A stretch of DNA of 64,000 bases, taken from assembly GCF_030028105.1 (NCBI RefSeq), contig NC_092383.1:87129921-87193920 (forward strand). The letters are read 5' to 3'. This DNA is from Mobula birostris. Taxonomy: Eukaryota. Both the position numbers and the translations under genes were made by a program. Positions 13,324 through 52,990 of the stretch are shown one piece after another; positions within the stretch are counted from its first letter, which is position 1; each line of letters begins with the position of its first letter. The notes under the pieces were generated by a model. That model saw only the letters and a list, made by a program, of their open reading frames with translations. It ran no database searches and had not been told where the DNA came from.

Positions 13324-13644
13324 TGTTGCCGTTGATTTCTGTCGCATAACTGCAGATCTCTCCATTGCTGAAGACTGTCAAATTAACCACTGCACTGGAT
13401 CTTGCTCCATGCCAATTTGTGGCGCTGCAGTAATATCGTTGGTGCTGGTGGTTGAAGAATTTACAACATAGAGCCAGTTCATTTGTATCTGAGATCTTTG
13501 TTTGTCCAGATGAGGTTTGTTCATACCATCTGTACTGACTGGGATGCGATCCCTGAAAAGACTCACAGGAAAGTAACACTAAGCCCCTGAGACATGAAAC
13601 ATTTGCTAGTGATGGATATCGAACCACAGGAGCAGACACGGGTT
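13324..13644 (-). pseudogene. Ig C2-type exon, copy A (splice acceptor AG mutated to GG)
   Basis: EPVSAPVV..LSCES.QGS.P..Y.WY..RYYCSATN...S..VNLTV. 321 nt, phase 1/1, donor GTAAGT. Acceptor reads CCGCGG versus CCACAG in copy B. Confidence 0.85.
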
Positions 13645-15137: not shown

Positions 15138-15457
15138 CATCAGATATTTGTAAATGTACATTAAACATCGAATTGAGATCTGGTGTTGTAATTCCACAGC
15201 TGTACCATCCTGTATCTCCAGTGTGAAGATTCTCCATAGTAACAGTAAATATTCTCTGTTCCGGGTTATCTGTGATTGACACTCGTCCACTCCGTCCGTG
15301 TTGCCATTTGTTTCCACTAAAACTGAACATTGGCGAGTCCATCCATGGCACCAATACTTTGTGTGTGAGCGATACTTTGCTTCGTAGTGAGAATCGATTG
15401 TGATCGCTCTTCCCACAATTCCTTTTACATATTTCTCTGCCCAAAATGCACCAGAAA
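15138..15457 (-). pseudogene. CD300/pIgR-like Ig V exon, copy A (1-bp deletion; B-strand Cys to Ser)
   Basis: 320 nt versus 321 in copy B. AATGGCAAC versus AATGGGCAAC. GAT TCT versus GAT TGT. KYWC..C, RVSITD and DTGWYSC motifs. CAG acceptor and GTAGGT donor. Confidence 0.9.
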
Positions 15458-16818: not shown

Positions 16819-16855
16819 CAGGTAGGAAGAGAATCAGGAGAATTGAAGCCCACAT
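16819..16855 (-). CDS. Leader exon A1 (MWASILLILFLP, phase 1) of the inactivated copy-A gene
   Basis: 37-nt hydrophobic ATG exon with a GTAAGT donor. G+TT continues into VSGA of the V exon. Confidence 0.85.
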
Positions 16856-16917
16856 TGTTTTATTCACAGAGACGCAGCCAGGACCTGTTTCTCCTCAGAG
16901 AGAAGTAATTGTGAAAT

Positions 16918-21856: not shown

Positions 21857-21896
21857 AGGTCAGGACACCAATCAGAACAATCAATGTCCATAACAT
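21857..21896 (-). other. Orphan leader exon A2 (MLWTLIVLIGVLT, phase 1); V exon deleted
   Basis: 40-nt ATG exon with a GTGAGT donor in a region paralogous to leader A1. The downstream intron lacks 1110 bp that contains the V exon. Confidence 0.8.
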
Positions 21897-21956
21897 TTTA
21901 TTGACAGAGACCCAGCCAGGACCTGTCTGTTCTCAGAAATCAATGACTAAAATTAA

Positions 21957-22019
21957 AATGAGGAAGAAGGCAGCAGGATGTTTGATCAAAAAACAACACT
22001 GACCCAAGTGGTGTGTGGT
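21957..22019 (-). promoter_or_regulatory. Proximal promoter A2 with the invariant 20-mer and a RUNX motif
   Basis: AATGAGGAAGAAGGCAGCAG at 21957-21976; TGTGGT at 22014-22019. Confidence 0.55.
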
Positions 22020-23789: not shown

Positions 23790-25220
23790 AAAATTAGTGG
23801 GAAGATAGAGGAATGGAAAGCTTTTAAAAACCTACAGAGAACAACTAAAAAATCATTAGAAGGGAAAAGATGAAATATGAGAGCAAGCTAGACATCGGAC
23901 CGCTAGAAAATGAGGCAGGAGAAATAATAACGGGACATGGAGATGGCTGATGAACTAAATAAGTATTTAGCATCAGTCTCCACTGTGGAAAACACTGGCA
24001 GAATGCCTGATTTTGTAGTGTGTGAAGGAAGAGAAGTTGGTGCAGTTACCATCACAAGAGAGAATGTGCTCAAAAAGCTGAAAGACCAAAAGGTACATAA
24101 GTCTTCCAGACCAGATGAACTACACTCTAGGGTTCTGAAGGAGGTAGTGTTAGAGATTGTAGTGGCATTAGAAATGATCTTTCAAAAATCTTTGGACTCT
24201 GGCATGGTGCCAGAGGACTCAAAAATGACAAATGTCACTCCACTCTTTAAGAAAACAGAAAGTCAACAGAAAGGAAATTACAGACCAGTTAGCCTGACCT
24301 CAGTGTTTGGGAAGATGTTAGAGTCAATTGTTAAGGATGAGGTGATGGAGTACTTGGTGACACATGACAAGATAGGACAAAGTCAGCGTGGTTTCCTTCA
24401 GGGAAAATTTTGACTGGCGAACCTGTTGGAATTCTTTGAGGAGATTACATGTTGGATAGATAAAGGGGATGTAGCGGATTTTCAGAAGGCCTTTAACAAG
24501 GTGCCACACATGAGGCTGCTTACCAAGTTTAGAGCCCATGGTATTACAGGAAAGTTACTGGAATGGTTAGAGCATTGGCAGATTGGAAGAGGGCAGCTAG
24601 TGGGAATAAAAGGATCCTTCTCTGGTTGGCTGCCAGTGACTAGTGATCTTCCGCAGGGGTTGGTTTTGGGACCACTTCTTTTTAGGCTTTATATAAATGA
24701 TTTAGATGATGGAATCATTTGTTGCCAAGTTTGCAGATGATACAAAGATTGGTGGAGGAGCAGGTAGTGTTGAGGAAACAGGTAGGATGCAGAAGGACTT
24801 AGACAAATTGGGAGAATGGGCAAGAAAGTGGCAATTGAAATACAATGTTGGAAAATGCATGGTCATGCACTTTGGTGATACAAGTAAATGTGCGGTCTGA
24901 CGATGTTTCCCATGGTGGGAGACTCTAGGACAAGTGGGCACAGCCTCAGGTTAGAGGGTCCCCTTTCAAAACAGGGATGCGGAGAAATTTCTTTAGCCGA
25001 AGGGTGGTGCATTTGTGGAATCTGTTGCCACATGCAGCTGTGGAGGTCAGGTTGTTGGGTGTATTTAAGGAAGAGATCGATAGGTTCTTGATTGGACATG
25101 GCATCAAATGTTACAGGGAAAACTGTGAACATGTTGAAGAGAAAAAATAAGGATCTGATGTGATTGAATGGGGGAGCAGACTCGATGGGTCATATGGCCT
25201 AATTCATTACCTATATTTTA
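23790..25220 (+). mobile_element. Decayed CR1 LINE, copy A
   Basis: MADELNKY, NYRPVSLTSV, DFQKAFNKVPH and AKFADDTK fragments with stops and deletions. Confidence 0.8.
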
Positions 25221-25270
25221 TGCATTATAATGATGATAATGCAGTTCACCTTCTCTCATTTTCAAGACCC

Positions 25271-25308
25271 TTTATTGTACATTCATGGGTTACGGTCACA
25301 GATCAGAA
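25271..25308 (-). other. Candidate terminal exon (TTC TGA, AATAAA at 25276-25271), copy A
   Basis: TTTTCTCAG acceptor, one codon, TGA, then a poly(A) signal. Paralogous to 12124-12129, 29793-29798 and 45571-45601. Confidence 0.4.
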
Positions 25309-25591
25309 CTGAGAAAAGTCACACCTTCCATTTGCAGATTCACACCCTGATGAACAATGCAAGCTGCAATATTTGCAGGTCACTCACTTTAATCAGCACC
25401 CAAGTTTACTCCCATTGTTTGTTCTCTTTTAAGATCTTTGTATCGTGACTGGAAATATTCATGATGTGTCTCTTTCTCACTCAATTTCCACAAAATGTGT
25501 CATAAAAACTCAGCAATCATGCACCTGATTAAATTTGAAAGTACATTCGCTAAATTTGTTATCAAAGTTTGTATATGTCACCATATCCTAC

Positions 25592-25606
25592 CTTGAGATT
25601 CATTTT
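25592..25606 (-). other. Candidate 15-nt cytoplasmic micro-exon (KMNLK), copy A
   Basis: Pyrimidine tract with an AAG acceptor and a GTAGGA donor, phase 0/0. Identical at 45885-45899. Confidence 0.3.
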
Positions 25607-26089
25607 CTTGCAGTAGATCAAAGAAACACAATAGATCAAATACTGATCAAGTAATGGAGACAGGGTTCATACCTGAGAGTCGTCCAAGAGTGAGAAACAA
25701 CCCGAAGTTTGGACCATTTAAGGGCTGGGTCAGAAGAAGAGGTCAGAGTGTCGGGGCTGGAAGCGAGGCGAGGGCAAGTCTGCAGTGATGCTTGGCTTTG
25801 TGATTAGGGTCTTGCACCATTTACTCGGCTTTGGGATGAACTGTGGCAGTTGCCTGCTCCGGCTGCATTGATGTCTGGCTTTGTGTCATTCATAAGCCTC
25901 TGGTTCTGAATGCTATTTGCTTGCTTTTTTTTTGTTTGTGAGGTATGTTCTGTGCATTGGGTGTTGGATGGTCTTATTTTTGGTGGTTTCTTTGTTTTGT
26001 GGCTGCCGGTAAGGTGACGAATCTCAAGGTTGTATAGCGCATACATGCCTCAATAATAAATGTATATTTTTACATTGAATTTGCATATG

Positions 26090-26980
26090 GTTACTATTGG
26101 AATATCCCTGAGCTCTTGGGCATTTGTTCCTTTCGGCAGACCTTCAGGAGTAAAACATGTAGTCCAGGAGTGCTGGTCCCCTTTTTTGAAGGTCTCGACT
26201 GGGATCCCATCAAGACGAATGGCTTCATTGTTTTCCAGGCTTCTGATGGCATCATGCACCTCTTTCATACTGGAAGGTTCCCCCATGTCTGCTTTCACAG
26301 GTCTCTGGAGCATTTGCTTAGTAATTTCTGGTTCAGCAATACAGTCACGGTTCAGCAGTTCTCTCTCCATTGGTCATTGATATCCTTCCATTATTTAGCA
26401 ATTTCTATCCATCCTTCGAGTGCAGGGGTTTTAATCTGAAGTAACTTAGTCTATAGACTGCTTTGGTGGCAATGAAGACGCCCCTCATGTCACTAGAGTC
26501 TGACAGCCTCGGGATTTCCAGGGCTTTCTCAGTTCACCAAGAATTCTTTCACTGCCTCACCTTCTGCTGGGCGTTTGCTTTGGCTCTGGAGTAAGATTCT
26601 CCTTTTGTCTTGCTGCCGATGTCATTCTGCTTGGAACCAAAGGCTTTCCTTTTCTTGGAGATAAGTTGCTCTATCTCCATGTTGTTATCAACAACCGAAT
26701 CCCGATGTTTTCTGGACTTTTCCCAAGGATATTTTTGCAGGTATTGAGGATGCTGGATTTAGTCTTGGCCTGATCTACTTCTTATGAACCCTAGTCTTTT
26801 TCATGAGTCTGAAGGACATCAGAATTTTTCCTGAGTCTGATGATGACCATGGTAGGAAAAACAGTTGAGCTCAGAACATTGGTCAATACCTGGAATAATG
26901 TTTTTGCAGCCATTATTGAGACTGGGGTAGGACTGTCAACTCAATATTCTGGAGTTCCATTGTTTTAGACCCTTCAGATC
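26090..26980 (-). mobile_element. RTE-clade LINE fragment, copy A
   Basis: ELLNRD..EPEIT.QMLQRPV..MGEP.SMKEVHDAIRSL.NNEA..LDGIP.E.FKKG resembles the RTE/BovB pre-RT segment. Confidence 0.7.
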
Positions 26981-27564
26981 AGGAGGGATTAAAGGAGAAG
27001 GTGTGGCATCACATGTCAAGGAAAATGTCACAGCAGTCCTAACAAAGACCAAATGAGAGATGATGCGGTATTTGATCTGCTGTTAGGGAATGATTCAGGG
27101 CAGTGGATAACAATAGATGTAGGGGAATACTTTGCACCTAGTGATGACAATGCCATTAGTTTCAAAGTAAATATACAAAGAAATAGGTCTGGTATGCAGA
27201 TTGAGTTTCTGAATCCGAGAAAGGCCATTTTTGTTGGTATCATAATCATCTGGCAAGTGTGGATTGGGGCAGAGTGTATTCTGGGAAAGGTGACTTGGTA
27301 AGTGGAGGCCTTCAAAAGTGAAATTCTGAGAGTACAAAGATTGCATGTGAATGTCAGATTAAAAGGTATAGATAACAGGCATGGAGAACCTTGGATTTCA
27401 AGAGATATTGAAGCTGTGGTTAAGAAAAACAGGCTGTGCTTAGCAGGTAGAGGCAGGTAGGAAAGATAAGAAATGAAAGCAAGTACTTAAGAAAGAAATC
27501 AGAAGGGCTAAATAAAGGCACAACTGACAAGATGAAGGAGAATCCTAAGGTATTCTGCAGATAT

Positions 27565-28448
27565 TGTTACATACCTCGAGATCTTGTGAATTTTTTTTTG
27601 TGAGAATGATATAATGGTCTTTTGGAGGTCACCTGATGTAATTTTCCTGCCGATGTGAGGTCACGTGATGACATGTGCACCACGGATATATAAGGGAAGA
27701 CCTCAGATGACGCAGTTAGTTTTTTAGTTTTTAGTTTTCCAGCTGGAACGTTAATGTGTCTCCGTTTCTGTTGCGTATTTGTTTTTATGACGCAGTTTCA
27801 TTTTTAAAATGGAGTATAACGTTCTGTTGCAAGGTACAATAGTGCTGGACTGGAAATTTTTGCTAGATGTGTTGATGTACCTTATTCCAGCAGTAGTACG
27901 GGAGAGTGAGGACTTTATCAAAGTACAGGACCCGAAGGATTGAGAAAAGTCGGTATCGTTTGGCAGTTTAACAAAGGATCGACCTTATTGAGTCTTCGTT
28001 GAAGGAGTAGCGACCTACAATCGAAGATAACTGTTGCCAAAAGAGCAAAGAGTTCATGCAATGTGCTCTCTAGAATTTAAGGTCAGTTGTTTTAAACTGT
28101 TTATTTCCTGCAACATGAATTGTTTGGACAGAACCAACAGGAAAGTCGCGTCTATGAAGAAATCCTTCTCCAGAGAAGTCTCTCCCAATTGAACGTGTAA
28201 ATCTGTTGGACTTTCGAATTTACCATTTTTAGAACTATATCTGACTTAACCGCTTTAAGAACTGTTTTCGCATTTAACGCTTTAAGAACCAGTGCCGAGT
28301 GACGATTTGTTGAACGGCTGCATAGCGGTTAACCTCCAGTTAAGGTTTATGTTTGTTTTTTTTAATTGTTTATCCATGTTTAATAAATGTTTGGTTGTTT
28401 TTATATAACCTGTCTTGATTGATATTCATTGCTGCCGGTTACGTAACA
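27565..28448 (+). mobile_element. Solo LTR (884 bp) with 4-bp TSD ATAT, inside a CR1 fragment, copy A
   Basis: TGTTACAT...ACGTAACA termini. ATAT at 27561-27564 and 28449-28452. TATA-like GATATATAAGG and AATAAA inside. Confidence 0.85.
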
Positions 28449-29234
28449 ATATGATAAGAACAAAATGATTGCAAGGGACAAAATCAGTTCTGTTGATGAT
28501 CAGAATGGTACACCCATGCATGGAGCCAGATGAAGTGGGGAGGTGTCACACCAGCAGGGTCAGAAACAGTTATTACCCTTCAAACATCAGGCTCGTAAAC
28601 CAGCGTAGATAACTTCACTCATTTCAACACAAAACCGATTCCACAACCAACAGGCTCACTTTCAAGGAATCGAAAAACTTATGTTCTCACTATTATTTTT
28701 TTACTATTTAATAATTTGTTTCTTTTATATTTGCACAATTTGTCTTCTTTGCAACATTGGTTGTTTGTACATTTTTGATTGTGTGGAGTTTTGCATTAAT
28801 TCTGTTTTATTTATTTGCATCTACTGTGAATGCCTGCAAGAAAATGGATCTCAGGGTAATATGTGGTGACACATATGTAACTTCATAAAAACTTTACTTT
28901 GAACTTTGAAGTGGATTACCTTAGAAGTCTATGTTAATTAACAGCCAGAAATATTACCAGATGAGACACCCAGCCAGTGAGAGCAGATCAGAGGCAGGAG
29001 ACACTGTGGTGGATAACTCCTGTTTGAACTGCTGTGCTGAAAGGCTTTTCATTCTCTGAAAGGTGGTGACAACATACACTCCATGCTCCTGAGTGAAGTT
29101 CCAACAACACAATATTCAGCATGCACCCGTCATGCAGTTTTATTTTAAGCATGTCGTACTAGACATTCAGCCATTCTTGTCTGGCACATGGTGTCAGGAT
29201 TAATCAGGTCACGTTATGAACGTTCCTGACTTGA

Positions 29235-29375: not shown

Positions 29376-31004
29376 AAAGAATCAAACCTTGCACCATTTA
29401 TCCATGCTGTTGACTTCAATCACATTTCTGCAGATACTGACACTGTTGGAGATGGATACATTGACCACTTCACTGGACTTCTCTCCCTTTTCCCCCAGGT
29501 GCTCACCCAATGAGAGATCTGTCACCTGACCCGGTTCGTTTCCTAATACTAGATCGAGTATGGCATTCCCCCTCATCGGCCTGTCAACATACTGGCCTTT
29601 GGTCTTACTTCTTCTCTCCCTCATCCACTGTATGAAGAAATTTATGCGATATCACATCATCATCTGACTACAAAGAATCTTCTAATATTTCTAACTTTCT
29701 TATCATGCAGTGATGACTCTTCCATTCCCAAATAGCTTACATCATGTAGCAGCTCCGAGGCTAATTGTACATTCACGGGTTACAGTTACTTGTCAAGTCT
29801 GAGAAAAGCAGCAATTTCCATTTGCAGATTCACACCCGATTTATGAATGCAAACTGCATCAAGCTGTAATCACTCATTTTGTTCAACACCCAAAGTTTAA
29901 TTCCATTGTTCATTCAACTTTAAGGTCTTTGAGTATTGTTTGCAAATATACTCAATTTCAATTAATTCTTATTTTATGTTCATTAAATTTTTGCATCATT
30001 CTCAGAAGAGAAAATTAACTTTATTATTAAAGAACATATTGTATATGTCACAATATAAGACCATAAGACAAAGGAACAGAATTAGGCCATCTGGCTCATT
30101 GGTCTCCTCCACCATTCAATCATGGCTGATCCTTTTTTTTAATCTCCTCCTCAACCCCAGTTCCCAGCCTTCTCCCCGTAACCTTTGATGCCATGTCCAA
30201 TCAAGAACCTATCAATCTCTTCCTTAAATACATCCAATGACCTGGCCTCCAAAGCTGTATGTGGCAACAAATTCCACAAGTATACCACCCTTTGGATAAA
30301 GAAATTTCTCCACATCTCTGTTTTGAAAGGGCGCTCCTCTATCCTGAGGCTGTGCCCTCTTGTCCTAGACTCTCCCACCATGGAAAACATCTTTTCCTCA
30401 TCTACTCTGGAGTGTTGTCTACAATTTCCCTTCCTTTGCCTCCCTCCCTTCTTAAAGTGTGGAGTGGCACTTCCAGAGTCTGGTTATTTTTCAAAGATAA
30501 CCACTAATGCTTGCACAATCTCTTCACTTACCTCTTTCAGAAACCTGGGTGTGGTCCATCTGATCCAGGTGACTTATCGACCACCTCGAGCACCTTCTCC
30601 TCAGTAAAAGTAACCACACTCACTTCTGCCCCCTGACATTGCCAAATTTCTGTCATTCCCACTGATATTTAGTATATTTTCCTTTTGTTTTTATGACAGT
30701 GTCAATGTCTCACAACTCAACACCTCTTCTAGCTTTTTCAAAGCTGAAGCAAGAAGTATGAATGAAATGCTCTCAATTTGTCTGGATGTGCAAGTCCAAC
30801 TATGTTTGGGATGCTGCACATCTTCCAGGAGGAAGTGACAGACTTAACTGTTCACTGCACTTTATTTCTACCCCATGGAGGCTGCAATTTGTGGCTTCTA
30901 CAAATGCAAAGAAATTCCTTACCCTCACTAGATGTATAAGAGCAGCAGTACACAGTAACAGCAATAAATATTGAAATGTATACCCCCTTGAAATTAGAAC
31001 TTAC

Positions 31005-31319
31005 TGTTGCCGTCGATTTCTGTCGTATAACTGCAGGTCTCTCCTTTGCTGAAGACTGTCAAATTAACCATTGCACTGGATCTCGCTCCATGCCAATTTA
31101 AGGCACTGCAGTAATATCGTTGGTGCTGGAGGTTGAAGGATTTACAACATAGAGCCAGTTCATTTGTATCTGAGATCTGTGTATGTCCAGATTGTTCATA
31201 CCATTTGTACTGAATGGGAAAGGATCCCTGGAGAGACTCACAGGAAAATAACACTAAGCCCCCAAGACGTGAAACATTTGCTGGTGATGGATATCGAACC
31301 ACAGGAGCAGACACGGGTT
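31005..31319 (-). CDS. Ig C2-type (FCRL-like) exon of the intact copy-B receptor gene
   Basis: 315 nt, phase 1/1, TTTTCCACAG acceptor, GTAAGT donor. EPVSAPVV..FSCESLQGSFPIQYKWY..RYYCSALN..VNLTV. Confidence 0.88.
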
Positions 31320-31732
31320 CTGTGGAAAAGAATTCAACAATCAGACACTGAATGAACAACTGCAAATCAAACTCTCTTCTGCCACTTTATTAGGTACACC
31401 TGTGCACCTACTTGTTAATGCAAATATCTAATTAATCTATTATCTGGCAGCAACACTGTCCATAAAAGCATGCAGACGTAATCAAAAGGTTCAGTTGTTG
31501 TTCAGGCCAAACATCAGAATGGGGAGGAAATGTGATCTTAGTGACTTTGACCATCGGATGATAGTTGGTGCCAGAAGGGGAGGTTTGAGTGTCTCAAAAA
31601 CTGTTAACTGTTGATGTCCTGAGATCTTCATGCACAACAGTCACTAGAGTTTACAGAGAATGGTGTAAAAAAACAAGAAATATCCAGTGATCAGCTATTA
31701 TGTGAGCAAAATGCCTTGTCAATGAGAGATGT

Positions 31733-33786
31733 GTGGACTGCAATGTTCTGACAAGAACTGTCCCTTGTTTTTAAAATAACAAGCCATGGGTGACAAAAGA
31801 CATTAAGGACATCCTGAACGCTAAAAAGAGGGCGTTTAGAGATGGAAGTAGGGAGGAGCTGAGGGCAATACAGAGTGACCTGAAAGCCAGGATCAGGGAG
31901 GCTAATGACAGGTACAGGAGGAAGCTTGAGTGGAAACTCCAGCAGAACAACATGAGAGAGATCTGGAGGGGGATGAGGACCATCACTGGGTTCCGGCAAA
32001 CTAGCAACAGAGGAGCAGAAGGCAGTGTGGACAGGGCCAATGAACTTAACCTGTTCTTTAACAGATTTGACAGTGTGGCCCCTGTCCATCCTGCACAGGA
32101 GACATCTGTTGTCGGCCCCCAACCAACACATATTCCACTCTCCCCTCCTACCCCTCCTCACAGTCCCCCACCCTGCTCTCATGACTATACCCCTTCCCCA
32201 CACGAAACCACCACGGTGGGCTTCACAGCTCTACAGGTGAGAAGACAGCTGAAACGTCTCAACCCAAGCAAGGCTGCAGGACCGGATGGTGTCAGTACCA
32301 GGGTGCTCAAACCCTGTGCCCCTCAGCTATGTGGAGTACATCGCCATGTATTCAACCTGAGCCTGAGGCTCTGGAGGGTTCCTGTATTGTGAAAGATGTC
32401 CTGCCTCGTCCCTGTGCCGAAGATGCCGTGCCCCAGCAGCCTCAATGACTACAGACCAGTGGCATTGACCTCCCACATCATGACCCTGGAGAGACTTGTT
32501 CTGGAGCTGCTCCGGCCTATGCTCAGGCCACACTTAGATCCCCTGCAGTTCGCCTACCAGCCTCGACTAGGAGTTGAGGATGCCATTGTCTTCCTGCTGA
32601 ACCGTGTCTACACCCACCTGGACAAGCCAGCGAGCACTGCGAGGGTCATGTTTTTTGACTTCTCCAGTGCGTTCAACACCATCCGCCCTGCTCTGCTGCG
32701 GGAGAAGCTGACAGTGATGTAGGTGGATGCTTCCCTGGTATCATGGATTCTTGATTACCTGACTGGCAGACCACAGTATGTGTGCTTGCAACACGGTGTG
32801 TCCGACAGAGTGATCAGCAGCACTGGGGCTCCACAGGGGACTGTCTTGTCTCCCTTTCTCTTCACCATTTACATCTCGGACTTCAACTACTGCACAGAGT
32901 CTTGTCATCTTCAGAAGTTTTCAGATGACTCTGCCATAGTTGGATGCATCAGCAAGGGAGATGAGGCTGAGTACAGGGCTACGGTAGGAAACTTTGTCAC
33001 ATGGTGTGAGCAGAATTATCTGCAGCTTAATGTGAAAAAGACTAAGGAGCTGGTGGTAGACCTGAGGAGAGCTAAGGTACCGGTGACCCCTGTTTCCATC
33101 CAGGGGGTCAGTCTGGACATGGTGGAGGATTACAAATACCTGGGAATACAAATTGACAATAAACTGGACTGGTCAAAGAACACTGAGGCTGTCTACAAGA
33201 AGGGTCAGAGCCGTCTCTATTTCCTGAGGAGACTGAGGTTTTTTAACATCTGCCGGACGATGCTGAGTTTATTCTACGAGTCTGTGGTGGCCAGTGCTAT
33301 CGTGTATGCCGTTGTGTGCTGGGGCAGCAGGCTGAGGGTGGCAGTCACCAACAGAATCAACAAACTCATTCGTAAGGCCAGTGATGTTGTGGGGATGGAA
33401 CTGGACTCTCTCACGGTGGTGTCTGAAAAGAGGATGCTGTCTAAGTTGCATGCCATCTTGGTCAATGTCTCTCATCCACTACATAATGTACTGGGTGGGC
33501 ACAGGAGTACATTCAGCCAGAGACTCATTCCACTGAGATGCAGCACTGAGCGTCATAGGAAGTCATTCCTGCCTGTGGCCATCAAACTTTACAACTCCTC
33601 CCCTGGAGGGTCAGACATCCTGAGCCAATAGGCTGGTCCTGGACTTATTTCATAATTTACTGGCATAACTTACATATTACTATTTAACTATTTATGGTTG
33701 CATTACTATTTATTATTTATGGAGCAACTGTAACGAAAACAATTTCCCCCCGGATTAATAAAGTATGACTATGACTATGACTATGT
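31733..33786 (+). mobile_element. 5'-truncated Rex1/Babar-type LINE (RT with in-frame stops), private to copy B
   Basis: KAAGPDG, DYRPVALTS, LQFAYQP..GVEDAI, FFDFSSAFNTI, GAPQGTVLSP, KFSDD. (ATGACT)n tail. ATGT duplicated at 31729-31732 and 33783-33786. Absent from copy A. Confidence 0.88.
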
Positions 33787-33787
33787 C

Positions 33788-34307
33788 TGTCAGTACTTCC
33801 AGTTGAACTTTGCCTCTTTATGTGTTTTGCCACCAGCTGTCAGTCTGTGGTTTTGTATTGCCATGTGCTCTTGTTTGTGTTCATGCCCATATTCTCCTGT
33901 CCCTGCTCCTGCTCTACTCCGGCCCCTGTATTACTGAGTACTCTGTCTTAGACCAGTTTCTCGTTATTACCTGTTTTGCTGCCACTTTTGTCTCATTGTG
34001 TTCCACCTATCATCTGCCTCTCTGTTTATTCTCAGTGTGTTTTAGCCCTCCATTTTTACCTGTTTGTTGCCAGATTCTGCCAGTGAATTTTCCTGAGCCT
34101 TTCCAGCATTTGTATCTGTACTCTGTCCGTCAGAATATCGACTCTGCCTGTTTCCCAGTTCTGGTTTTTGGATTTCTCTGGATGTGTTGATCTCTGCCTG
34201 AACTTTGACACCGACTTCGTTTGCACCTCAGGATTTGTTACTCAATTAATATCACTGTGTGCACAGTGCTGGGTCTGCGATTGGATCCCTGCTCCAGTGC
34301 CCTGACA
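33788..34307 (+). mobile_element. Solo LTR, copy B
   Basis: Paralog of 14051-14558; TGTCAG...CTGACA. Confidence 0.7.
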
Positions 34308-34882
34308 AGCTCAGAGGAGAATGGCCAGACTGGTTCAAACTGACAGAAATACAAATAACCACATTTTATGACAGTGGTGTGCAGAAGAGCATCTGGACAC
34401 ACAACACATCAAACCTTGAAAAGAATCTGCCATAACAGCAGAAGACCATACAGATAAACTCAGTGGCCACTTTGTTAGGCATAGGAGGTTCCTGATGAAG
34501 TGGCCATTGAGTGTTTAGAGACACAACTTGTGAGATATCCATCACATGTTTGGAAGCTTTCAGGAGAGAATGAAATTGTAACTGGGTTCAGTGACCTGCT
34601 GTATAGAGGGAAACTTTTGACACTGATATTAATGCAGAGATTTTGAGGGATGGACAGGGTCTGGACAAAGATCTTGTAATCTGTGCAGAGGCTGAACAGG
34701 AGGAGGAGGAGATTACTGTTCTTCAGACACATCCACGAGATGGGTATTTCTCCATTCAACAAGCTTCACCCTGGGATCAGCACATCGTCACTCCCCAGGA
34801 CATCTAATGCTCTGACCCTTCCCAGAGGAAACATGGATGACACATTTATTTTACTGAAGGCACAAATCACTGAGAAACCTAC

Positions 34883-35203
34883 CATCAGATACTTGTAAAT
34901 ATACATCAAACATCAGATCGGGACCTGGTGTTGTAATTACACAGCTGTACCATCCTGTATCTCCAGAGCGAAGATTCTCCATAGTAACAGTAAATATTCT
35001 CTGTTCTGGGTTATCTGTGATTGACACTCGTCCACTCCGTCCATGTTGCCCATTTGTTTCCACTAAAACTGAACATTGGCGAGTCCATCCATGGCACCAA
35101 TACTTTGTGTGTGAGCGGTACTTTGCTTCATAGTGACAATCGATTGTGATCGCTCTTCCCACAACTCCTCTTACAGGTTTCTCTGCCCACAATGCACCTG
35201 AAA
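34883..35203 (-). CDS. CD300/pIgR-like Ig V exon of the intact copy-B receptor gene
   Basis: 321 nt, phase 1/1, open frame: VSGALWAEKPVRGVVGRAITIDCHY..KYWCHGWTRQC..RVSITDNPEQRIFTVTMENLRSGDTGWYSC. The extra Cys pair after the C-strand Trp is typical of CD300/pIgR/TREM V domains. Confidence 0.92.
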
Positions 35204-36548
35204 CTGAAGGAGGCATTTTCAGATTTGAGAGGAAAGGAACAACTTAATATTTCCCATGAAACCACAGCCAATGGTTTTGGTGTGAAGTGCAGTCAGTGCT
35301 GTTACTGTGTCAGCTGTGTCAGTGCTCTCTCCCCTGTGTCAGTACATTGTGGGTTCACTTCCCACTCCAGAGTCCTGAGCAGAAACCCAGGGCTGATCTT
35401 CCAGTGCGGTACTGAGGGAGAGCCGCAATATTGAATTATAAATTACAACAGATCATGCTGGACCTCCAAGTGTCCACAAAGATCCCAGGTAATTTATTTG
35501 GGATAGATAGAGCTACTGTACATGGAGATTTGTGTGTGTATGTTTCTTGTGTTCCAGGGTTGAATCGGGGGTCAGTGGGATCATTTGAGATTATGTTTCA
35601 ATTCTCTCCATAATGACAATGTCCTGACTTCCTCCGCACTTACAGACAAGTTTATAAACTGCAGTAAGAAACTCCTCATGATGTCTGAAACTGAGCCCTC
35701 TGGCTCTGATGGAAATTTTATATTCTGTACCTGTCAGGTATTTCTCTGTGTAGTTAGAAGGTGCTGCAACAGTGGTCATTACCACTTTGGTGTCCAGAAA
35801 TCCAGGTGTGATTTCATTTCCTTTAGGGACTTATTTAGTGTTTATATCTAATTTCTGGAATTAAAAACCACATATCCATAATGACAATGATCAACTACCA
35901 GATTGTCAAAATCCCATCTGGATCAGAAAGGCCTTTAGGGACAGAAATCTCTCATCCCTCCCCACCCAGGTTATCTTTGACTCCACATCTAGAAATATTC
36001 TTTACTAAACGCCCCACTGAAATGGCCCAGGAAAGACACTGATAACAGGAGAATAACATCAATTTTCATAGTGATCCCAACAGAGTGAGATCAGATTCCA
36101 GTTGACATGATATTCCCGTTTAACAGCCTCTAGATTCCATCAGCTGGACATATTCTTCCCTCACCTGACTCCACACTATTCCCCTTTTCTTCTTGTCTGC
36201 TTCCACCTCTCACCAATCTCCAAAGTCTACCCCTTTTCCTTCCCTTTCCATTTGCCTGTCGTGCTTCACCCCTCCTAAGTCCCCGACGACCTAGTAGACC
36301 CAGTCTTACACCTCCCCTCTCATATTTCGACCATCTCCCTCTCCACTCACACTTGAGTGTCACAGACCAAATTGTAGGCGATTCCCTTCCCCTAACAGAA
36401 GCTGCTGAGTTCCCCCAGGAGTGCACTCTGAACTCCAATTTCTGATATCTTTAGTGTCTACAGATATTCAAGTACTGTTCCGCGAATGGTGTATGACCCC
36501 CCAAACCAACACTGCTTATGCAAACGTCCAGCACAATTTGTCACTTAC

Positions 36549-36585
36549 CAGGTAGGGAAACAATCAGGAGAATTGAAGCCCACAT
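36549..36585 (-). CDS. Leader exon B1 (MWASILLIVSLP, phase 1)
   Basis: 37-nt ATG exon with a GTAAGT donor; in frame with the V exon. Confidence 0.87.
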
Positions 36586-36647
36586 TGTTTTATTCACAGA
36601 GACGCAGCCAGGACCTGTCTGTCCTCAGAGAGAAGTAATTGTGAAAT

Positions 36648-36714
36648 AAAAATGAGGAAGAAGGCAGCAGGAAGTTGGATCAAAAAACCAAGGGTGACAC
36701 AGATGGTGTGTGGT
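36648..36714 (-). promoter_or_regulatory. Proximal promoter B1: invariant 20-mer, ETS core, RUNX motif
   Basis: AATGAGGAAGAAGGCAGCAG at 36651-36670, CAGGAAGT at about 36668, TGTGGT at 36709-36714. Confidence 0.55.
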
Positions 36715-38248
36715 ACATGACAATCTGGAAAGCATTTCGGTATATTTAGCAAGAGAGAAGTACTTATACAATTCTGAAAGACTGAACGAAATGGTGAGAA
36801 GAGTTGAAGTATTGGACACAAGCAACAGTAGATGTTCTAATCTGAACGCACGGTAAATGGCTGGAGGTGTCCTGAAACAGGGGATTCATCTGAAATATTG
36901 ACCACTCTACCTTCTCAGACCTCACATGACTCCCAAAGCTCCCCCAGAAGTTTTATTTTTTGCTTGACTTAAAATACTCACTGGAGTTTAGAAGAAAGAC
37001 GGAATCTCATAGAAACCTATTGAATATTGAAAGGCCTTGTGTGAGTGGATGTGGAGAGAATATTTCCTGCAGTAAGTGAGTCTACAAACAGATGACACAG
37101 CCTCAGAGTACATGAGGTTGATAGATTCTTGATTTGTAAAGGCGTTAAAGGTTACAGGGTAAGGCAGGAGAATGGGGTTGAGAAGGTCAAATTCTGCTCC
37201 AACGCCTTTGGGGCTTATGGGCTTCTAATACAGGCACCAATCTTGTGAATCTCTTCTGCAGCATGAATTCTTGAATGCTCATTGCTCATTCAATGCCAGA
37301 AGCCTTCCTTAACAACTACTTTACCATCTCCCTCTGTTCCAAATCTCGGGGAGTTATGGACTTGCACTCCAAGATTTGTACATCTTTCTGGACCTGCCCT
37401 GATGGTAATTCAATCAAACACAACACATGAGGAAGAAATGACATGAGTTCTGATGAAGCGCCTCAGCCTGAAAGGTTGATTGTTTACTCTTTTCTATAGA
37501 TTCTGCCTGGTCATCAGAGTTCCACCAGCTTTTTCCCTGTGTTGCCATAATTTTTGGGAACTTGCTACTGAGGAGGGAGCAAAGTGGGAAATAAGTGAGA
37601 TGTAGAAGGGGCTTTTCCTGCAAACTCTGATTACATACTTGGCTTCATTCTTTCTTCTCTTTGAGCCTTGAAAGCTCATCTCCTCTGAATTCTATTCCAT
37701 CTGTCAGTGCAATTTCAAGACCTCTGATGGGATTCCACTTTGCTTCAGTTAGATTTGAGAGGAAACCTTCAGAATGGATTTACACATTCACGATGGTGTG
37801 AAATCCACATCAGATCCATTCTTAAAGCAAATCAACTCCATTTGACAGTAAATGATCTGTGTGAGTAGACAACCCCTGTAGTTTCTATTTCCCACAGAAT
37901 AATAGAGCACAGTAAATGGCAGTTCACACTTGTCAAAGGAGAGAACATTTCTATCTTTCCTATCCCACTCCCATAGTCTCCCTGACACCTGAAACTGCAC
38001 ACCTTTGCTCACCTTCTCAGTGGCTAGCTTCCCAGCATCTTTGTTCACCTTGTTAGTTCTCTCAATGTTACTCTATCCAGATTCATACTGTGCGATTCCC
38101 TGGGGCAGCTGAAGTCTGAGTAGTGCTTCAGTATCGGGGATAACAATTCTCACCAGTCACACGTATTGGAGAAGTAATACAGAATCAGGATCAAAATCAG
38201 GTTTCATATCACTGGCATACTGTATGCTGCAAAATTAGCTGTAGATGT

Positions 38249-38563
38249 GTGGGCACGTGGCGAAGTGGTTAAGGCATTGGACTAGCAACCTGAAGGTCAT
38301 GAGTTTGAGCCCCAGCCGAGGGAACGTGCTGTGTCCTTGACCAAGGCACTTAATCACACATTGCTCTGTGACAACACTGGTGCCAAGCTGTATGGGTCCT
38401 AACGCCCTTCCCTTGGACAACATTGGTGTCGCGGAGAGGGGAGACTTGCAGCATTAGCAACTGCTGCTCTTCCATACAACCTTGCCCAGGCCTGCGCCCT
38501 GGAGAGTGAAGACTTTCCAGGCACAGATCCTTGGTCTCGCAAGACTAACGGATGCCTTTACTT
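38249..38563 (+). mobile_element. tRNA-headed SINE with 14-bp TSD, private to copy B
   Basis: A-box TGGCGAAGTGG and B-box GAGTTTGAGCC. TSD TTAGCTG(T/C)AGATGT at 38235-38248 and 38564-38577. Empty site in copy A near 18520-18532. Confidence 0.85.
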
Positions 38564-40388
38564 TTAGCTGCAGATGTATGAAACCCTGACTATCTATTCA
38601 TTTCCATTGATGCTGCTTGAGCTGCTGAGTTCCTCCAGCATTTTGTGTGTGTTGCTTTTGATTTCATTGTGGTGTGAGGGTCGTGGTGATGCAAGAATGT
38701 GGCTGATTTATATTTTCCTGAATTTTACTTACTGACTTTGCAATTGTTTATAAACACTCAATTTCGTATTGATAAGTAGATAAATGATAAATAAATTCTG
38801 TATACACGGAGAGCTTTTGTTACTTTGGGTTTGTTTGAGATGTAACTGTACAGTATATTAGCCTTGAATGTGTATCTGCTTAAATTCTGTATATTGTTAC
38901 TATGAGTGCTGACTCTATTCCATCAGTCACTGCTGTCATTGTGTAATGTTCGCCCTTAGCAAAGGATGTGGTTAGAACTTCTGTCTTCTTTATTTGTCTT
39001 ACCAAACAGAATTTATGGAAGTACCAATAGATGCTACACATTGAGAGATCATTGCTGTCACCATGTTCAGATATGGCCCATGTGAGGATTGAGAGACAGT
39101 GAAGTGGATTTATAGTTCACAGACTTTTAAGTGAACAGAGATAGAGGAATAAATCAATAAACGCTAAGCCAAACAGGGCTGTTAACTAAAACTCTCAAAA
39201 GGAAATGAAGACAGCACTACGCTGAAAGGAATAACTATGTATAAAATGAATACCGCTAGTCTTCAGAGTCAGTTGGCTCAACAGTCCAATTTCTCTGGCT
39301 ATGCTGAATGCACGCAGGCAATAAAACATTGCTGTCTATAGAAGACCATTCCACAAATTTACTGCTCTTTGGCTAAAAAAAAATTCTTCCTTACTTCTGT
39401 TCTAAAGGGTCACCCCTCAATTTTGAGGCTGTGCCCTCTAGTTCTGGAACACAGAACATAGAACAGCACAGCACATTTCAGGCCCTTTGGCCCACAGTTT
39501 TGTTCCAATCTATAGTCCATGATGAACCTAATCCTTCCATCCTGCAAAGCCTGTAACAGTCTGTTTCCATACATAAATGTACGTGCCTATCTAAGAGCCT
39601 CTAAATGTCCATATTGTATCAGCCTCTACCTCCATGCCAGCAGTGCGTCCCAGGAACTCATCAATCTATGTAAAAAAAACTTACCTCTTACATCTCCCCT
39701 AAACTTTCCCCCCACTCACCTTAAATGAATGTCCTCTGAATTGGTCATTGTCACCATGAGAAAGAAGTGCTGGCTGTCCACTCAATCTATGCCTTATACA
39801 CCTCTTCTACATCACTCCACCAAGTTACCTCTCACCCTCCTTTGCTCCAAAGAGAAAATCCCTGGCTCGCTCAACACTTACTGTTTCCTCAAAAGTCATG
39901 TTTTCTGATCCAGGCAGCATTTTGGTAAACCTCCTCTGCACCCTCTCTACAGCTTTGGCAAGCTTCCAACAATGAGGCAATCAGAACTGAACTAAATTCT
40001 CCAAGTGTGATTGAAACAGAGTTTTATGGAGTTGTAACATTAGCTTGTGGCTCTTGAACTCAATCTCTCGACTAGTGAGGTCCAGCACATCATACACATG
40101 CTTTAACACCTTTTCAACTTGTGCAGCAACTGTGAGGAATCTACAGACTCTGAGACTAATATGCTTCTGTACCTCAATATTGCTACGATTAACCAGCCTT
40201 CAAGTTCGATCCTCCAAATTTATCACTTCACATTTTTCTGAGTTAAACTTCATCAATCACTTCTCCACCCAGCACGCCATCCTGTCTTAACCCTGTTGTA
40301 ACTTACAACAAGGCTCTGTACCATCCACAGCACCGATAATATTTGCGTCACATGCAAACTTATGTACATATGGAACTGCGCAGAAGTT

Positions 40389-40838
40389 GCTTTCAAAGAA
40401 AAAGATCTGTGAAGTTTTGAAATACCAAATATTTACTATAAAGAGCAGTAAATAGTAAAAAAAAATAAATCAAATCAATATTTGGTGTGATGATCCTTTC
40501 TCTTTAAAACTGCATCAATTCTGTCAGACAAAGAAAGCCAAGGTGCTTTCAAAGAAAATGAACTGTGAAGTTTTGAAATACCAAATATTTACTATAAAGA
40601 GCAGTAAATAGTAAAAAAAATAAATCAAATCAATATTTGGTGTGATGATCCTTTCTCTTTAAAACTGCATCAATTCTGTCAGACAAAGAAAGCCAAGGTG
40701 CTTTCAAAGAAAATGAACTGTGAAGTTTTGAAATACCAAATATTTACTATAAAGAGCAGTAAATAGTAAAAAAAAATAAATCAAATCAATATTTGGTGTG
40801 ATGATCCTTTCTCTTTAAAACTGCATCAATTCTCTCAG
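40389..40838. repeat. Tandem triplication of a 155-156 bp unit
   Basis: Units start at 40389, 40545 and 40700. Single copy in A at about 20381-20527. Confidence 0.9.
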
Positions 40839-42174
40839 ATACACTGTTGTGCCGTTTTATAAGAAATTGTCTGGTAGGTTGCCATAGTTCTTCTCCAGAC
40901 TTTGGCTGCCACACTTGCTTCTGATTCTCCAGGTAATCCCAGACAGCCTCAGTGATGTTGAGATCATGGCTCTGTGGAGGCCATACCATCTGAAACCATA
41001 TAAAAACTCTTGTGTGCCTAAATCTGTACACTGGAGTTTTTAAGTAATATTACGAAGCTTGTTCATACGTAGAAGTGTCCATCAGTCAGGAATTCATAAC
41101 CCGGGAATGAACTGCATGGTCTTTTATCCTACACATCACTCCTCCCACCAGATCTGCTTTGTAAACTGACACTCTTCCACTTTTAACCCAGATCTGAGCA
41201 GAGTTACTGACGTAAAACCTAATGAAGTGGCCACTGAGTTTTTAAAGGCCGAAACCTGTGAGATATCCATCACCTCTTTGGTGGCTTTCAGGAAGAAATG
41301 AAATTGTGACTGGGTTCAGTGACTTGCAGAAGCATTTGGCACTGAATTTGGAAAAAGTTCTGGTAATCTACGCTGAGGCTGAGTAAGAGGAGAAGGAGTT
41401 TGATGTTCTTCAGGCATATCAACGAGATGGGCATTTCTACATTCAGCAAACTTAACCCAGAGACAAGCATGTCATCACTCCCGGGACATCTAATGCATGG
41501 ACCTTTCTCAGAGGAGACATGGATGAGACAGAAATCTCTCATCCCTACCCGCCAAGGTTTACCTTTGACTCCAGATCTCATAATATTCTTTCTTAATTGC
41601 ACACTGAAATGGCCCAGGAAAGACACTGATTTCAAGACAATAACATCGAATATCACAGTGATCCCTGCAGTGTGAGATCAGATTCCAGCAATGGGAGACC
41701 TGATGATTCTGCTTAACAGCCTCCAGGAGATATCTCCAGCTGGACATATTCTCTCCACCCCCCCCCCACCCCCCCAGCTGGCTCCACTCTATTACCCTTT
41801 TCGTGTTGTCTTCTTCCATCAGTCACCAAGCTCCAAACTCCAATACTTTTCCTCCCCATTCCATCTGCTTGCCATGCTTCACCCATCCTCAGTTTCCAAC
41901 CACCAAGAGAATTCAGTCTCAGACCTCTCTTTCTCCTATTTACATTCTCTCACTCTCCACTCTGACTTCATGCAGATTCTTGACCCAAAACCTGGTCTAG
42001 TCCCTCCACACTGACAGACATTTCTTGGCACATTGACTTCCTCCGGAAGTCTGCTCTAAAATCCAGATTCCAACATCTTCACTGTCTACACTTACTCAAG
42101 CACTGCTCTGTAAACTATGCATGACCCCAAACCAACACTGCTTACACAGAAGTCTAGTGTTGTTTGTCACTCAC

Positions 42175-42214
42175 AGGTCAGGAAACCAATCAGAAGAATC
42201 AAAGTCCATAACAT
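42175..42214 (-). other. Orphan leader exon B2 (MLWTLILLIGFLT, phase 1); V exon deleted
   Basis: 40-nt ATG exon with a GTGAGT donor. Invariant 20-mer at 42275-42294. Same deletion junction as A2 (after 41526). Confidence 0.8.
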
Positions 42215-44099
42215 TTTATCGACAGAGACCCAGCCAGGACCTGTCTGTTCTCAGAAATCAATGACTAAAATTAAAATGAGGAAGAAGGCAGCAGGATGTT
42301 TGGTCAAAAAACAACAGTGACCCAGGTGGTTTGTGGTACGTGACTATCTGAAAGGCTTTTAGTTATATTTAGCAAGACAGGAACATTTAAACAATTCCCA
42401 AAGTCTAAATGAAGTGGTGAGAAGTGTTAAAGTATTGGACACAAGCACCATTAAATGTGCAAATCTGAAGGAAAAATAAACAGCTGGAGGTGTTCTGATT
42501 AATCTGAAATGTTGACCACTCTGTCTCCGCAGATCCCGCCTGACTCCTGAAGGCAGGAGAATGGGGTTGAGAGAGAAAATAAATCAGCCAGGGGAGTGAT
42601 GGACTTACACTCCAAGATTTGGACATCGTTCTGGATCTGCCTTGGAGATAATTCAAACAAACATGTTCTGGGGAACTTGCTGCTGAGAAAGGAGCAAAGT
42701 AGGAAAGAGCTGTCATGCAGAAGGGCTTTTCATGCAAAGTAACCATGCAGTACATCCATTCATTTCCATAGATTCTGCCAGGCCTTCTGAATTCCTCCAG
42801 CATTTTGTGTTGTTGCTTTTGGTTTTATTATAGTCGAGGGTTAAGGTGATCCAAGAATGTACATTGTACAGTATGAGTGCTGACAGTCTGTACATTGTAC
42901 AGTATGTGTGCTGATTCCATTGCATCAGTCACTGTTGTCATCTGTGTAATGTTCACCCTCAGTGAAGGATGTGGTCAGAACTTCCGTATTCTTTACTTGT
43001 CTTACCAGAAAGAATATAGAGAAGTGTCAATGGTTGCTACACACTGACAGCTTGTTCTGGTCTCTTCCGATATTGCCCCATCACTTCTTGGAAAACGTCT
43101 CAACAGCCATGGTTCAATATGCTGATGAGAACAAATGCAGAGATACAAAAAATCTTCAGCAAAGCATTTTGTTTGAGCAACTATATCACTGACCAACAAT
43201 AACAATTTGGCTATTTTACCATTGTGTTTAAATCTAATAATGGTTGTATGCACACTTTTAAATACAATGGTGGGATTATAAAACATTTACAACTCTGAAG
43301 TTGAAAAGTTATCCAAGAACTACAGCTTTGTAAGTTATTGGTCCGACTGCACTTGAGAATATGGTGAACAGTATTGGGCCCCTTATCTTCGAAAGGGTGT
43401 GCTGTAATTGGAAAGGTGTCCAGAGGAGGTTCCCCAGAACGATCCCAGCGGTGAGAGGGTTAATGTATGAGGAGCGTTTGATGGCTATGGACCTGTACTC
43501 ACTGGAGTTTAGAAGAATGGTGGGTGTGGTGGGGGTGGGCGGGGTTCTCAATAAAATCTCTTGTATTGTGAAGGGCCAAGAAGCTAGATGGAGTGTATGT
43601 GGAGAGGATGTTTCCTATGGTGGGTGAGTCCCAGATGAGAAGGTGCTGTTCCTTCAGAATTCATTTGACAGACTGCAGTGGAGGACAAATCATTAGATAT
43701 ATTGAAAGTGGAGGTTGATATGTTTTTGATTTGTAAAGGTGTTAAAGGTTATGGGGAGAATAAGGTTGAGGGGGATAATAATTCAGCCATAATAGAATGA
43801 GGAACAGACTCAATGGGCTGAATGGACTCAGTTTTAACAGGTCCAGATTCACAAGTGGGATCACTGCATCTGGAATTATCTCCGGCTCATCAACATCCAT
43901 CAGATAACCCTGAGCTGAAGATGTAATGAGCTCCAAACAGACTCTGGTGTTACTGCTTCACGTCCTCACAGAGTATGTAAACGATATTATGTGATATTCC
44001 TCAGTGTCAGTGAGGCGTTTCAAGGTTCAAAATTCAAATTAAATTTATTACCAAATATGTGCTTGTCACCATTTATGATCCTGATTAGAAAGGACGTAC

Positions 44100-45510: not shown

Positions 45511-45570
45511 CTATATTTTATGCATTATAATGATGATAATGCAGTTCACTTTCTCTCATTTTCAAGACCC

Positions 45571-45601
45571 TTTATTGTACATTCATGGGTTACAGTCAGT
45601 T
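45571..45601 (-). other. Candidate terminal exon (AAC TGA, AATAAA at 45576-45571), copy B
   Basis: TTTTCTCAG acceptor, one codon, TGA and a poly(A) signal. Confidence 0.4.
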
Positions 45602-45884
45602 CTGAGAAAATTCACACCTTCCATTTGCAGATTCACACCCTGATGAGCAATGCAAGCTGCAATATTTGCAGCTCACTCATTTTATTCAGCACCCAAGTTT
45701 ACTCCCATTGTTTGTTCTCTTTTAAGATCTTTGTATAGTGACTGGAAATATTCATCATGTGTCTCTTTCTCCCTCCATTTCCACAAAATGTGTCATAAAA
45801 ACTCAGCAATCATGCACCTTATCAAATTTGAAAGTACATTCGCTAAATTTGTTATCAAAGTTTGTATATGTCACCATATCCTAC

Positions 45885-45899
45885 CTTGAGATTCATTTT
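45885..45899 (-). other. Candidate 15-nt cytoplasmic micro-exon (KMNLK), copy B
   Basis: Phase 0/0, compatible with the phase-0 donor of the TM exon at 52831. Confidence 0.3.
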
Positions 45900-46379
45900 C
45901 TTGCAGTAGATCAAAGAAATACAATAGATCAAATACTGATCAAGTAATGGAGACAGGGTTCATACCTGAGAGTGGTCCGAGAGTGAGAAACAACCCGAAG
46001 TTTGGACAATTTAAGGGCTGGGTCAGAAGAAGAGGTCAGAGTGTCGGGGCTGGAAGCGAGGCGAGGGCAAGTCTGCAGTGATGCTTGGCTTTGTGATTAG
46101 GGTCTTGCACCATTTACTCGGCTTTGGGATGAACTGTGGCAGTTACCTGCTCCGGCTGCATTAATGTCTGGCTTTGTGTCGTTCGTAAGCCTCTGGTCTG
46201 AATGCTATTTGCTTGCTTTTTTTTCTTTGTGAGATATGTTCTGTGCATTGGGTGTTTGATGGTCTTGTTTTTGGTGGTTTCTTTGTTTTGTGGCTGCCGG
46301 TAAGGTGACGAATCTCAAGGTTGTATAGCGTATATATGTCTCGATAATAAATGTATATTTTTACATTGAATTTGCATAT

Positions 46380-52815: not shown

Positions 52816-52830
52816 CTGACCTAGACTTAC

Positions 52831-52921
52831 CTTTCTGTCTCTCATGAACCATGTGACAGCGATAGTGCAGATCCCCAGCAGAGCAAAGAACAGCCAGCGC
52901 CTCACTTTCCATATCATGTAA
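52831..52921 (-). CDS. Transmembrane exon of an immune-type receptor (YMIWKVRRWLFFALLGICTIAVTWFMRDRK)
   Basis: Acceptor TCTCTTCCACTTTGTTCAG, donor AAG|GTAAGT, 91 nt, phase 2/0. 18-residue hydrophobic run followed by a basic stop-transfer segment. Confidence 0.8.
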
Positions 52922-52990
52922 CTGAACAAAGTGGAAGAGATACAGAATCAGTGGAAGGAGAGGAGACAGCTTTGTATTTGAAATATTTAC

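Follow-up and report, generated by a model that had tools for sequence, protein, structure and literature searches.

MDIRs (modular domain immune-type receptors) belong to the oldest known paired activating and inhibitory immunoglobulin (Ig) receptors, and the domain types joined in them stay apart in mammals, where CD300/pIgR and FCRL constitute separate families. The family was described by Cannon et al. (2006, Immunogenetics 58:362; as cited in PMC3031540), and its defining features are taken here from PMC3031540, database names, and general knowledge. We analyse a three-exon MDIR copy (unit A) located on the minus strand of a 64,000-nucleotide (nt) stretch of the Mobula birostris genome (contig NC_092383.1), referred to below as the window, to which all coordinates pertain. 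Our reading, to which we assign a probability of about 0.8, is that this copy is a transcribed MDIR gene of a ray of the stingray and manta order, that it is the upper duplicate of a tandem pair, and that it makes up a unit of its own devoid of a membrane anchor, with a secreted or aberrant product.

Among the closest known systems, MDIR2 of clearnose skate (P0227, 416 amino acids, aa) is homologous to the copy over both V and C2 domains, and the two have in common a leader, a CD300/pIgR-type V domain with the motif KYWCHGWTRQC, and one C2 domain with GS-PI-Y-WY and an extra Cys pair; unlike the copy’s unit, MDIR2 goes on into a stalk, a transmembrane segment, and a long tail with tyrosines resembling immunoreceptor tyrosine-based inhibitory motifs (ITIMs). 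The nearest relatives by C2 domain (identity 75-77%, with ~82% for V) are P0208 and P0210 of Hemitrygon akajei, named uncharacterized, and P0209 of Hypanus sabinus, named CMRF35-like molecule 7 isoform X2, all of which have the rare double Cys (LCCKSF) in common with the copy. P0208 and P0210 differ from it in possessing a transmembrane segment and three ITIM-like motifs, while P0209 is a short 248-aa form composed of leader, V, and C2 without a normal transmembrane segment; the copy in turn is set off from all three by a two-codon deletion after WYEQ and by its own substitutions. Mammalian CD300 proteins (CD300lf/CLM-1 and CD300a) and pIgR domain 1 have the V fold and the second disulfide in common with the copy, but CD300 has one V and no C2 domain, pIgR is built of V-type domains alone, and both carry CX7C in place of CX6C. 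Membrane-proximal repeat domains of mammalian FCRL5 align with the whole C2 exon (PVS-P-V, C-E--GS-PI-Y, YYC), whereas FCRL ectodomains include neither a V domain nor the extra Cys58-Cys95 pair, and identity to the copy’s C2 is only ~30%. The soluble immune-type receptor (SITR) of carp, with two Ig domains, a CD300/MDIR-like V, and no transmembrane or signalling motif (PMC3031540), sets a precedent for soluble members of such families; it differs from the copy in coming from a teleost, in its reversed domain order (V/C2-type first, V second), and in forming a multigene family devoted to soluble proteins, where the copy is a truncated duplicate.

Gene model and transcription of the copy

The first-pass annotation, made from the sequence alone, had proposed three exons with canonical splice sites and matching phases coding for about 224 aa, and direct reading of the borders confirmed this model, as follows:

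36549..36585, minus strand: coding part of exon 1, 37 nt, ATG followed by a hydrophobic signal-peptide stretch of 12 codons (MWASILLIVSLP), then donor GTAAGT in phase 1
35204..36548, minus strand: intron 1, 1345 nt, joint ends CT..AC, contig depth zero in the unique bins 36060-36459
34883..35203, minus strand: exon 2, 321 nt, V-set Ig domain of CD300/pIgR type with an extra Cys pair (CX6C)
31320..34882, minus strand: intron 2, 3563 nt, joint 31319->34883 present in four runs
31005..31319, minus strand: exon 3, 315 nt, C2-set Ig domain of MDIR/FCRL type, ending in phase 1

All borders are of the AG/GT kind, every junction is in phase 1, and the joined frame runs through 224 aa without a stop. 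Exon 2 lies between a pyrimidine tract with acceptor ..CCTTCAG and the donor GTAGGT, exon 3 between acceptor ..TCCACAG and donor GTAAGT, and the 5′ untranslated region (UTR) of exon 1 extends to at least ~36618. The V and C2 motifs quoted in the annotation were all found in the translated exons. The protein of exon 3 contains two N-glycosylation sites and the family cysteines 26, 58, 70, and 95 together with an extra Cys57.

Public runs were searched with the V exon, and assembled contigs of the four best ones (X1-X4, ~100 million letters each, from a single study and a single organism) were placed on 30660-36650. All four runs contain the joint 31319->34883, which skips 3563 nt with ends CT..AC (minus-strand GT..AG), and three of them contain the joint 35203->36549, skipping 1345 nt (CT..AC). 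Depth amounts to ~100-770 in exon bins and falls to zero in the unique intron bins 34660-34859 and 36060-36459; together these values mean that the runs behave as RNA, though their records are silent on the matter. Exon 3 contigs are identical to the window in one run and differ from it by 1.6-2% in the others. Thus the copy is transcribed and exons 1-3 are spliced as predicted; a failure of co-splicing, listed beforehand as a ground for giving up the model, did not occur, since both predicted joints are carried by contigs.

Intron 2 accommodates, on the plus strand, a decayed reverse transcriptase of a long interspersed nuclear element (LINE; 31790-33631), recognized by RVT_1 matches on stop-separated pieces. 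Contig depth over it is very high, as expected for a high-copy repeat present in RNA.

Family assignment of the two domains

Both domains were searched and folded separately. The V exon matches Pfam V-set with E 2e-13, and among solved chains it finds pIgR at 6.6e-50 overall, D1 being the best single domain (54 bits), and CD300 members at 1.8e-19, with NKp44, TLT-1, TIM, and TREM2 ranking far behind. Its AlphaFold (AF2) model, based on 76 family sequences, has a mean predicted local distance difference test (pLDDT) value of 93.9 and superimposes on mouse CD300lf with a template modelling score of 0.90-0.94 at 38-40% identity, followed by CD300a, teleost and human pIgR D1, and then TREM2. Sequence and predicted fold therefore support the earlier attribution of this domain to the CD300/pIgR type. 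The spacing CX6C instead of CX7C, pointed out at the same time, is real (KYWC-HGWTRQ-C) but is not a peculiarity of this gene, since 67 of the 76 family V domains share the spacing and the KYWCHGWTRQC motif of MDIR2 is identical.

The C2 exon stays just below Pfam cut-offs (Ig_C17orf99 24 bits, Ig_2 23 bits), and FCRL5 is its single clear relative among solved chains (6e-34 summed, best repeat 31 bits), the alignment covering its whole length, PVS-P-V through to the final strand. Other solved chains are far behind, with titin at 1.6e-4 and CAR/JAM at 0.06-0.4. Scores of the order found for the V and C2 exons are well outside what chance would give. An exhaustive HMMER pass over 1.8 billion representative proteins yielded 627 relatives, in which cartilaginous-fish proteins come nearest and are followed by mammalian FCRL5/FCRL3 and by teleost multi-Ig proteins with automatic names, e.g., CD22-like and hemicentin-like. 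The extra Cys pair (58, 95) is typical of family C2 domains and absent from FCRL5, and Cys57 (LCCKSF) is added on top of the family cysteines in the copy and its nearest relatives. The predicted structure (pLDDT 84.8) is an ordinary C2 sandwich with generic matches, JAM-A D2 and CD22 first, at weak E-values that do not discriminate between families. This ranking is what an unrelated Ig family of CTX/JAM or CD22/Siglec descent, resembling MDIRs only superficially, could invoke in its favour; such descent is refuted by sequence, since JAM/CAR are left at 0.06-0.4 where FCRL5 reaches 6e-34 and skate MDIRs are close homologues, and the trees described below put both domains inside the MDIR clade, so we regard it as hardly tenable. 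The C2 domain is accordingly FCRL-type, as had been claimed, with FCRL5 as the nearest solved chain and FCRL5/FCRL3 as the nearest mammalian relatives, and the clustering with CTX/JAM that had been named as a refuting outcome was not seen by sequence.

Search with a full-length relative of Mobula hypostoma (P0005) collected 119 proteins from rays, sawfish, skates, sharks, and one chimaera. RefSeq calls them polymeric immunoglobulin receptor-like, Fc receptor-like protein 5, CMRF35-like molecule, or uncharacterized, and three of them, from clearnose skate, bear the names Modular domain immune-type receptor 2, 3, and 5. The family is modular in layout, as follows:

leader, V, C2, transmembrane segment, and ITIM tail: MDIR2, P0208, P0210
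leader, V, C2, C2, Lys/Arg-bearing transmembrane segment, and short tail: P0005
two or three V-C2 pairs with either kind of tail: P0007, P0002, MDIR5
short, without transmembrane segment: P0209, P0215 (two stingray species)

In the C2 tree, the domain of the copy groups with that of its lower twin (unit B, see below) and with P0208/P0210/P0209 (support 97), this group falls within an elasmobranch clade containing MDIR2/3/5 (support 96), chimaera sequences adjoin that clade, and the sister of the whole cartilaginous-fish group is formed by mammalian FCRL5/3 domains. The V tree, composed of family sequences alone with no outside outgroup, places the copy’s V, with support 88, among those at the N-termini of stingray and manta proteins, with skate N-terminal V domains adjoining. 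Since both domains nest in the clade of skate MDIR2/3/5, the gene is an MDIR and not merely MDIR-like, a link stronger than the one claimed at first, with MDIR2/3/5 standing among the family matches themselves.

Features regarded as characteristic of the family agree with this assignment in three respects: the N-terminal V domain has a second Cys pair and is of the type seen in CD300, pIgR, and TREM, the C2 domain sits on a separate phase-1 exon combined modularly with the V exon, and the locus belongs to a clustered multigene family, as is evident from the tandem duplicate, leader cassettes, and neighbouring transmembrane and tail exons in the window. A transmembrane segment with ITIM tail, or a charged one with short tail, is absent from the unit; as relatives without this segment exist, its absence weakens the word “receptor” rather than family membership. 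The neighbouring families fit less well, because the V exon is spliced to a C2 exon instead of standing as a single V directly before stalk and transmembrane segment (CD300), because the second domain is of C2/FCRL type in place of an array of two to five V-type domains without C2 (pIgR), and because the N-terminal domain is a CD300-type V, FCRL proteins having FcR-type C2 domains alone.

The first-pass annotation also considered the gene unannotated-looking. No protein model of its own was found among relatives of 136-737 aa, the best identities being 88% (V) and 77% (C2), and the C2 exon had no match in a set of 5.8 billion proteins, of which only those of 58-182 aa were eligible. As no protein in the searched lengths exceeds these identities, the gene may well be unannotated, support for this part of the claim being indirect.

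Tandem duplication and the fate of the exon 3 donor

The copy lies in the upper half of a tandem duplication of 18-20 kb, in which 11822-28543 corresponds to 29491-48809 with identity of 90-94%. In minus-strand order, the duplicated block consists of the last exon of an upstream activating-type gene, an old leader-only cassette, and the leader, V, and C2 exons, and it ends ~1.5 kb past the C2 exon; the stalk, transmembrane, and tail exons were not carried along. The lower twin, unit B (13324-16893, minus strand), has DNA identity of ~93% to unit A:

16819..16893, minus strand: unit B leader; two acceptors, placing the exon start at 16893 or at 16884
15138..15457, minus strand: unit B V exon, frameshifted by a 1-bp deletion and with Ser in place of the canonical Cys
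13324..13644, minus strand: unit B C2 exon, its acceptor reading GG instead of AG

Unit B is disabled, whereas frames and splice sites of unit A are intact. Over 30 residues, unit B is identical to a protein recorded for Mobula birostris.

What lies beyond exon 3 determines the kind of product. Search for stalk, transmembrane, and tail exons from 31005 to 21900 (tblastn with parts of ten relatives, loose thresholds) returned noise only, and the window from 1 to 31000 contains no intact second C2 or stalk exon. Only two family fragments are located between exon 3 and the leader cassette at 21900:

29403..29489, minus strand: relic of 29 codons from the 3′ end of what was a second C2 exon; identity to the corresponding section of P0004, 97%
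25395..25478, minus strand: duplicate of the last cytoplasmic exon that the upstream activating-type gene has at 45691-45774, not in frame with exon 3

The relic lies where the duplicated block ends on its low side; it is without an acceptor, GT is missing at the site that relatives use for splicing, and the sequence preceding the relic looks LINE-like by eye. The duplicated last exon, beginning at 25478, was tried as a 3′ exon and rejected, being out of frame for exon 3 and having no supporting joint. Of the earlier designation “receptor”, membership in the MDIR family thus stands and the membrane anchor does not, as no stalk, transmembrane, or tail exon occurs in the copy’s unit, and the product as encoded here would not be a membrane receptor.

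Several contigs stop exactly at 31004/31005, as expected at branching paths. Two continuations appear among the contig joints and loose ends listed, namely read-through of the donor (see below) and joining to a leader-type exon. In three runs the exon 3 donor is joined in frame to a leader-type exon, and the joint is reported as going back. In runs X2 and X4 the letters following exon 3 are GAGAAACAGG, matching the unit B leader at 16893, while the unit A leader reads GACAGACAGG; in run X1 the junction is at the second acceptor, 9 nt further in (36612-36614), which is common to both leaders. Both leader acceptors keep the frame through the leader ATG. Because the leaders share 57 identical bases, exceeding the assembler word, the rest of a joined contig is not assignable to either unit. 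Read-through transcription from unit A spliced into the unit B leader is the simplest reading of this joint, and the acceptor used appears to be a natural one, since stingray models P0016 and P0215 likewise come into the leader exon from the upstream side, without a change of frame. In translation, the message so formed meets the frameshifted V exon of unit B and an early stop, which results in a junk tail and a total of 366-369 aa.

The same joints could be taken for back-splices from the exon 3 donor to an acceptor in its own exon 1, giving a circular RNA of exons 1-3. The X1 junction, located at the acceptor common to both leaders, would allow this, the more so as the same contig enters the V exon start with no listed difference from unit A; but the junction letters in X2 and X4 are those of unit B and not of unit A, the shared 57 bases make the continuation of such a contig unassignable, and no special mechanism has to be assumed for forward splicing into the following unit. 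We consider a circular product improbable.

An alternative that would restore an anchor is a full activating-type membrane receptor, in which exon 3 is spliced across unit B, over more than 30 kb, to stalk, transmembrane, and tail exons located before the window start. The phase-1 end and strong donor of exon 3, as in the C2 exons of full-length relatives, are compatible with this, and the original 3′ exons of the pre-duplication gene are expected downstream of unit B. No such splice, however, is found among the listed joints and loose ends, where the joints from 31005 reach a leader-type exon only, and positions 1-31000 are without an intact second C2 or stalk exon, so this arrangement seems unlikely, if somewhat less so than a circle.

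The frame upstream of the leader ATG is open in both units (..PGCVSVNKT-M.., minus strand, 36586-36623 and 16856-16893) and encloses the two acceptors 9 nt apart. The stingray models P0016 and P0215 translate this stretch, which may represent either a spliced 5′UTR or a usable internal exon.

Possible products, neighbouring elements, and family turnover

To return to the transcribed duplicate severed from its anchor, the leader, V, and C2 exons were duplicated without those for stalk, transmembrane segment, and tail, and the lower twin was disabled afterwards. Two products could follow. Read-through of the exon 3 donor would yield a secreted two-domain protein of 227 aa, potentially acting as a soluble binder or decoy for the family ligand, while the read-through message spliced into the unit B leader would be aberrant and end in a junk tail. 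Elements relevant to the first outcome are as follows:

30994..31004, minus strand: read-through tail, Ser-Lys-Phe-stop if the donor is unused, 227 aa in total
30861..30866, minus strand: AATAAA, ~130 nt past the read-through stop, candidate polyadenylation signal

A contig of run X3 (30817-31033) crosses the exon 3 donor, and 30660-30940 is covered by other contigs at ~1/6 to 1/3 of exon depth. The only sensible protein obtainable from the copy would be a secreted V-C2 molecule, competing for the ligand of membrane MDIRs or tagging it. Soluble V-C2 forms have precedents in the short models of two stingray species (P0209, P0215) and in carp SITR. That such a form has a role is nevertheless doubtful in our estimation. 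By analogy with CD300-like V domains, a lipid would be the first guess for its ligand and polymeric Ig the second. More speculative still, and rather unlikely, is the idea that the copy has been kept as a source of a secreted V-C2 decoy or opsonin and that the in-frame leader acceptors may permit head-to-tail splicing of tandem units as a route to (V-C2)n receptors.

Several observations weigh against the reading given above. That the runs are RNA at all is a guess, and their contigs give neither proportions of isoforms nor transcript ends. Contigs continue beyond the AATAAA, to 30660 and further, and those of the intron following exon 3 differ from the window by 3-4.5%, compared with 0-2% for exon contigs, so some of them may derive from another copy. 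Amino-acid changes acquired in the C2 domain since duplication, polarised with six relatives, number 8 plus the two-codon deletion in unit A and 6 in the dead unit B; the copy has thus changed as much as its dead twin, which fits relaxed constraint rather than maintained function.

These counts bring forward the alternative of a transcribed but functionless remnant, the frames of which are open only through the youth of the duplication and the messages of which are aberrant and degraded. It gains from the unit having no transmembrane exon, from splicing into the unit B leader that leads to a frameshifted junk tail and early stop, from derived C2 changes as numerous as in the dead copy, and from the lack of a near-identical protein model among the searched lengths. 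It has to contend with three exons that keep frames, the six family cysteines, splice sites, and the start codon during the time in which the twin gained three disabling lesions, and with short V-C2 forms lacking the transmembrane segment being modelled in two stingray species (P0209, P0215). We take the remnant to be a serious contender, while still holding it below even odds.

Elements recognizable in the vicinity of the copy are the following:

52825..52938, minus strand: Lys/Arg-bearing transmembrane exon of activating type belonging to a neighbour, upstream of unit A and not part of the copy
~51000-51097, minus strand: cytoplasmic exon of the same neighbouring activating-type gene
45691..45774, minus strand: last exon of that gene
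42179..42238, minus strand: leader-only cassette upstream of unit A, with its twin at 21861-21920

The exon at 52825..52938 is the sole family transmembrane exon found within the window, and neither V nor C2 exons turned up there on the upstream side of the neighbour’s transmembrane and tail exons. The leader-only cassettes (blocks 41218-42547 and 20900-22229) are ~72% identical to the leader region, and the stretch with the V exon is gone exactly between homologous flanks; as their phase-1 donors are kept, they may be candidate alternative first exons. At 6983-7030 on the minus strand, 16 codons are left from a further C2 exon (LGGSVSMPCESLQGSL) in unrecognisable surroundings, and a run of 252 N at 61292-61543 marks an assembly gap or a masked stretch.

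The family to which this gene belongs has been known since 2006, and gene models of its members exist in numerous shark and ray genomes, though with misleading labels; the copy is one more of them, and existing knowledge of MDIRs remains unchanged by it. Its description is useful for the annotation of ray genomes, where the family is scattered under pIgR-like, FCRL5, and CMRF35-like names. The locus hints at a possible soluble form and offers a snapshot of family turnover: after a recent duplication of 18-20 kb one copy is decaying, while the other is intact, expressed, and severed from its anchor.

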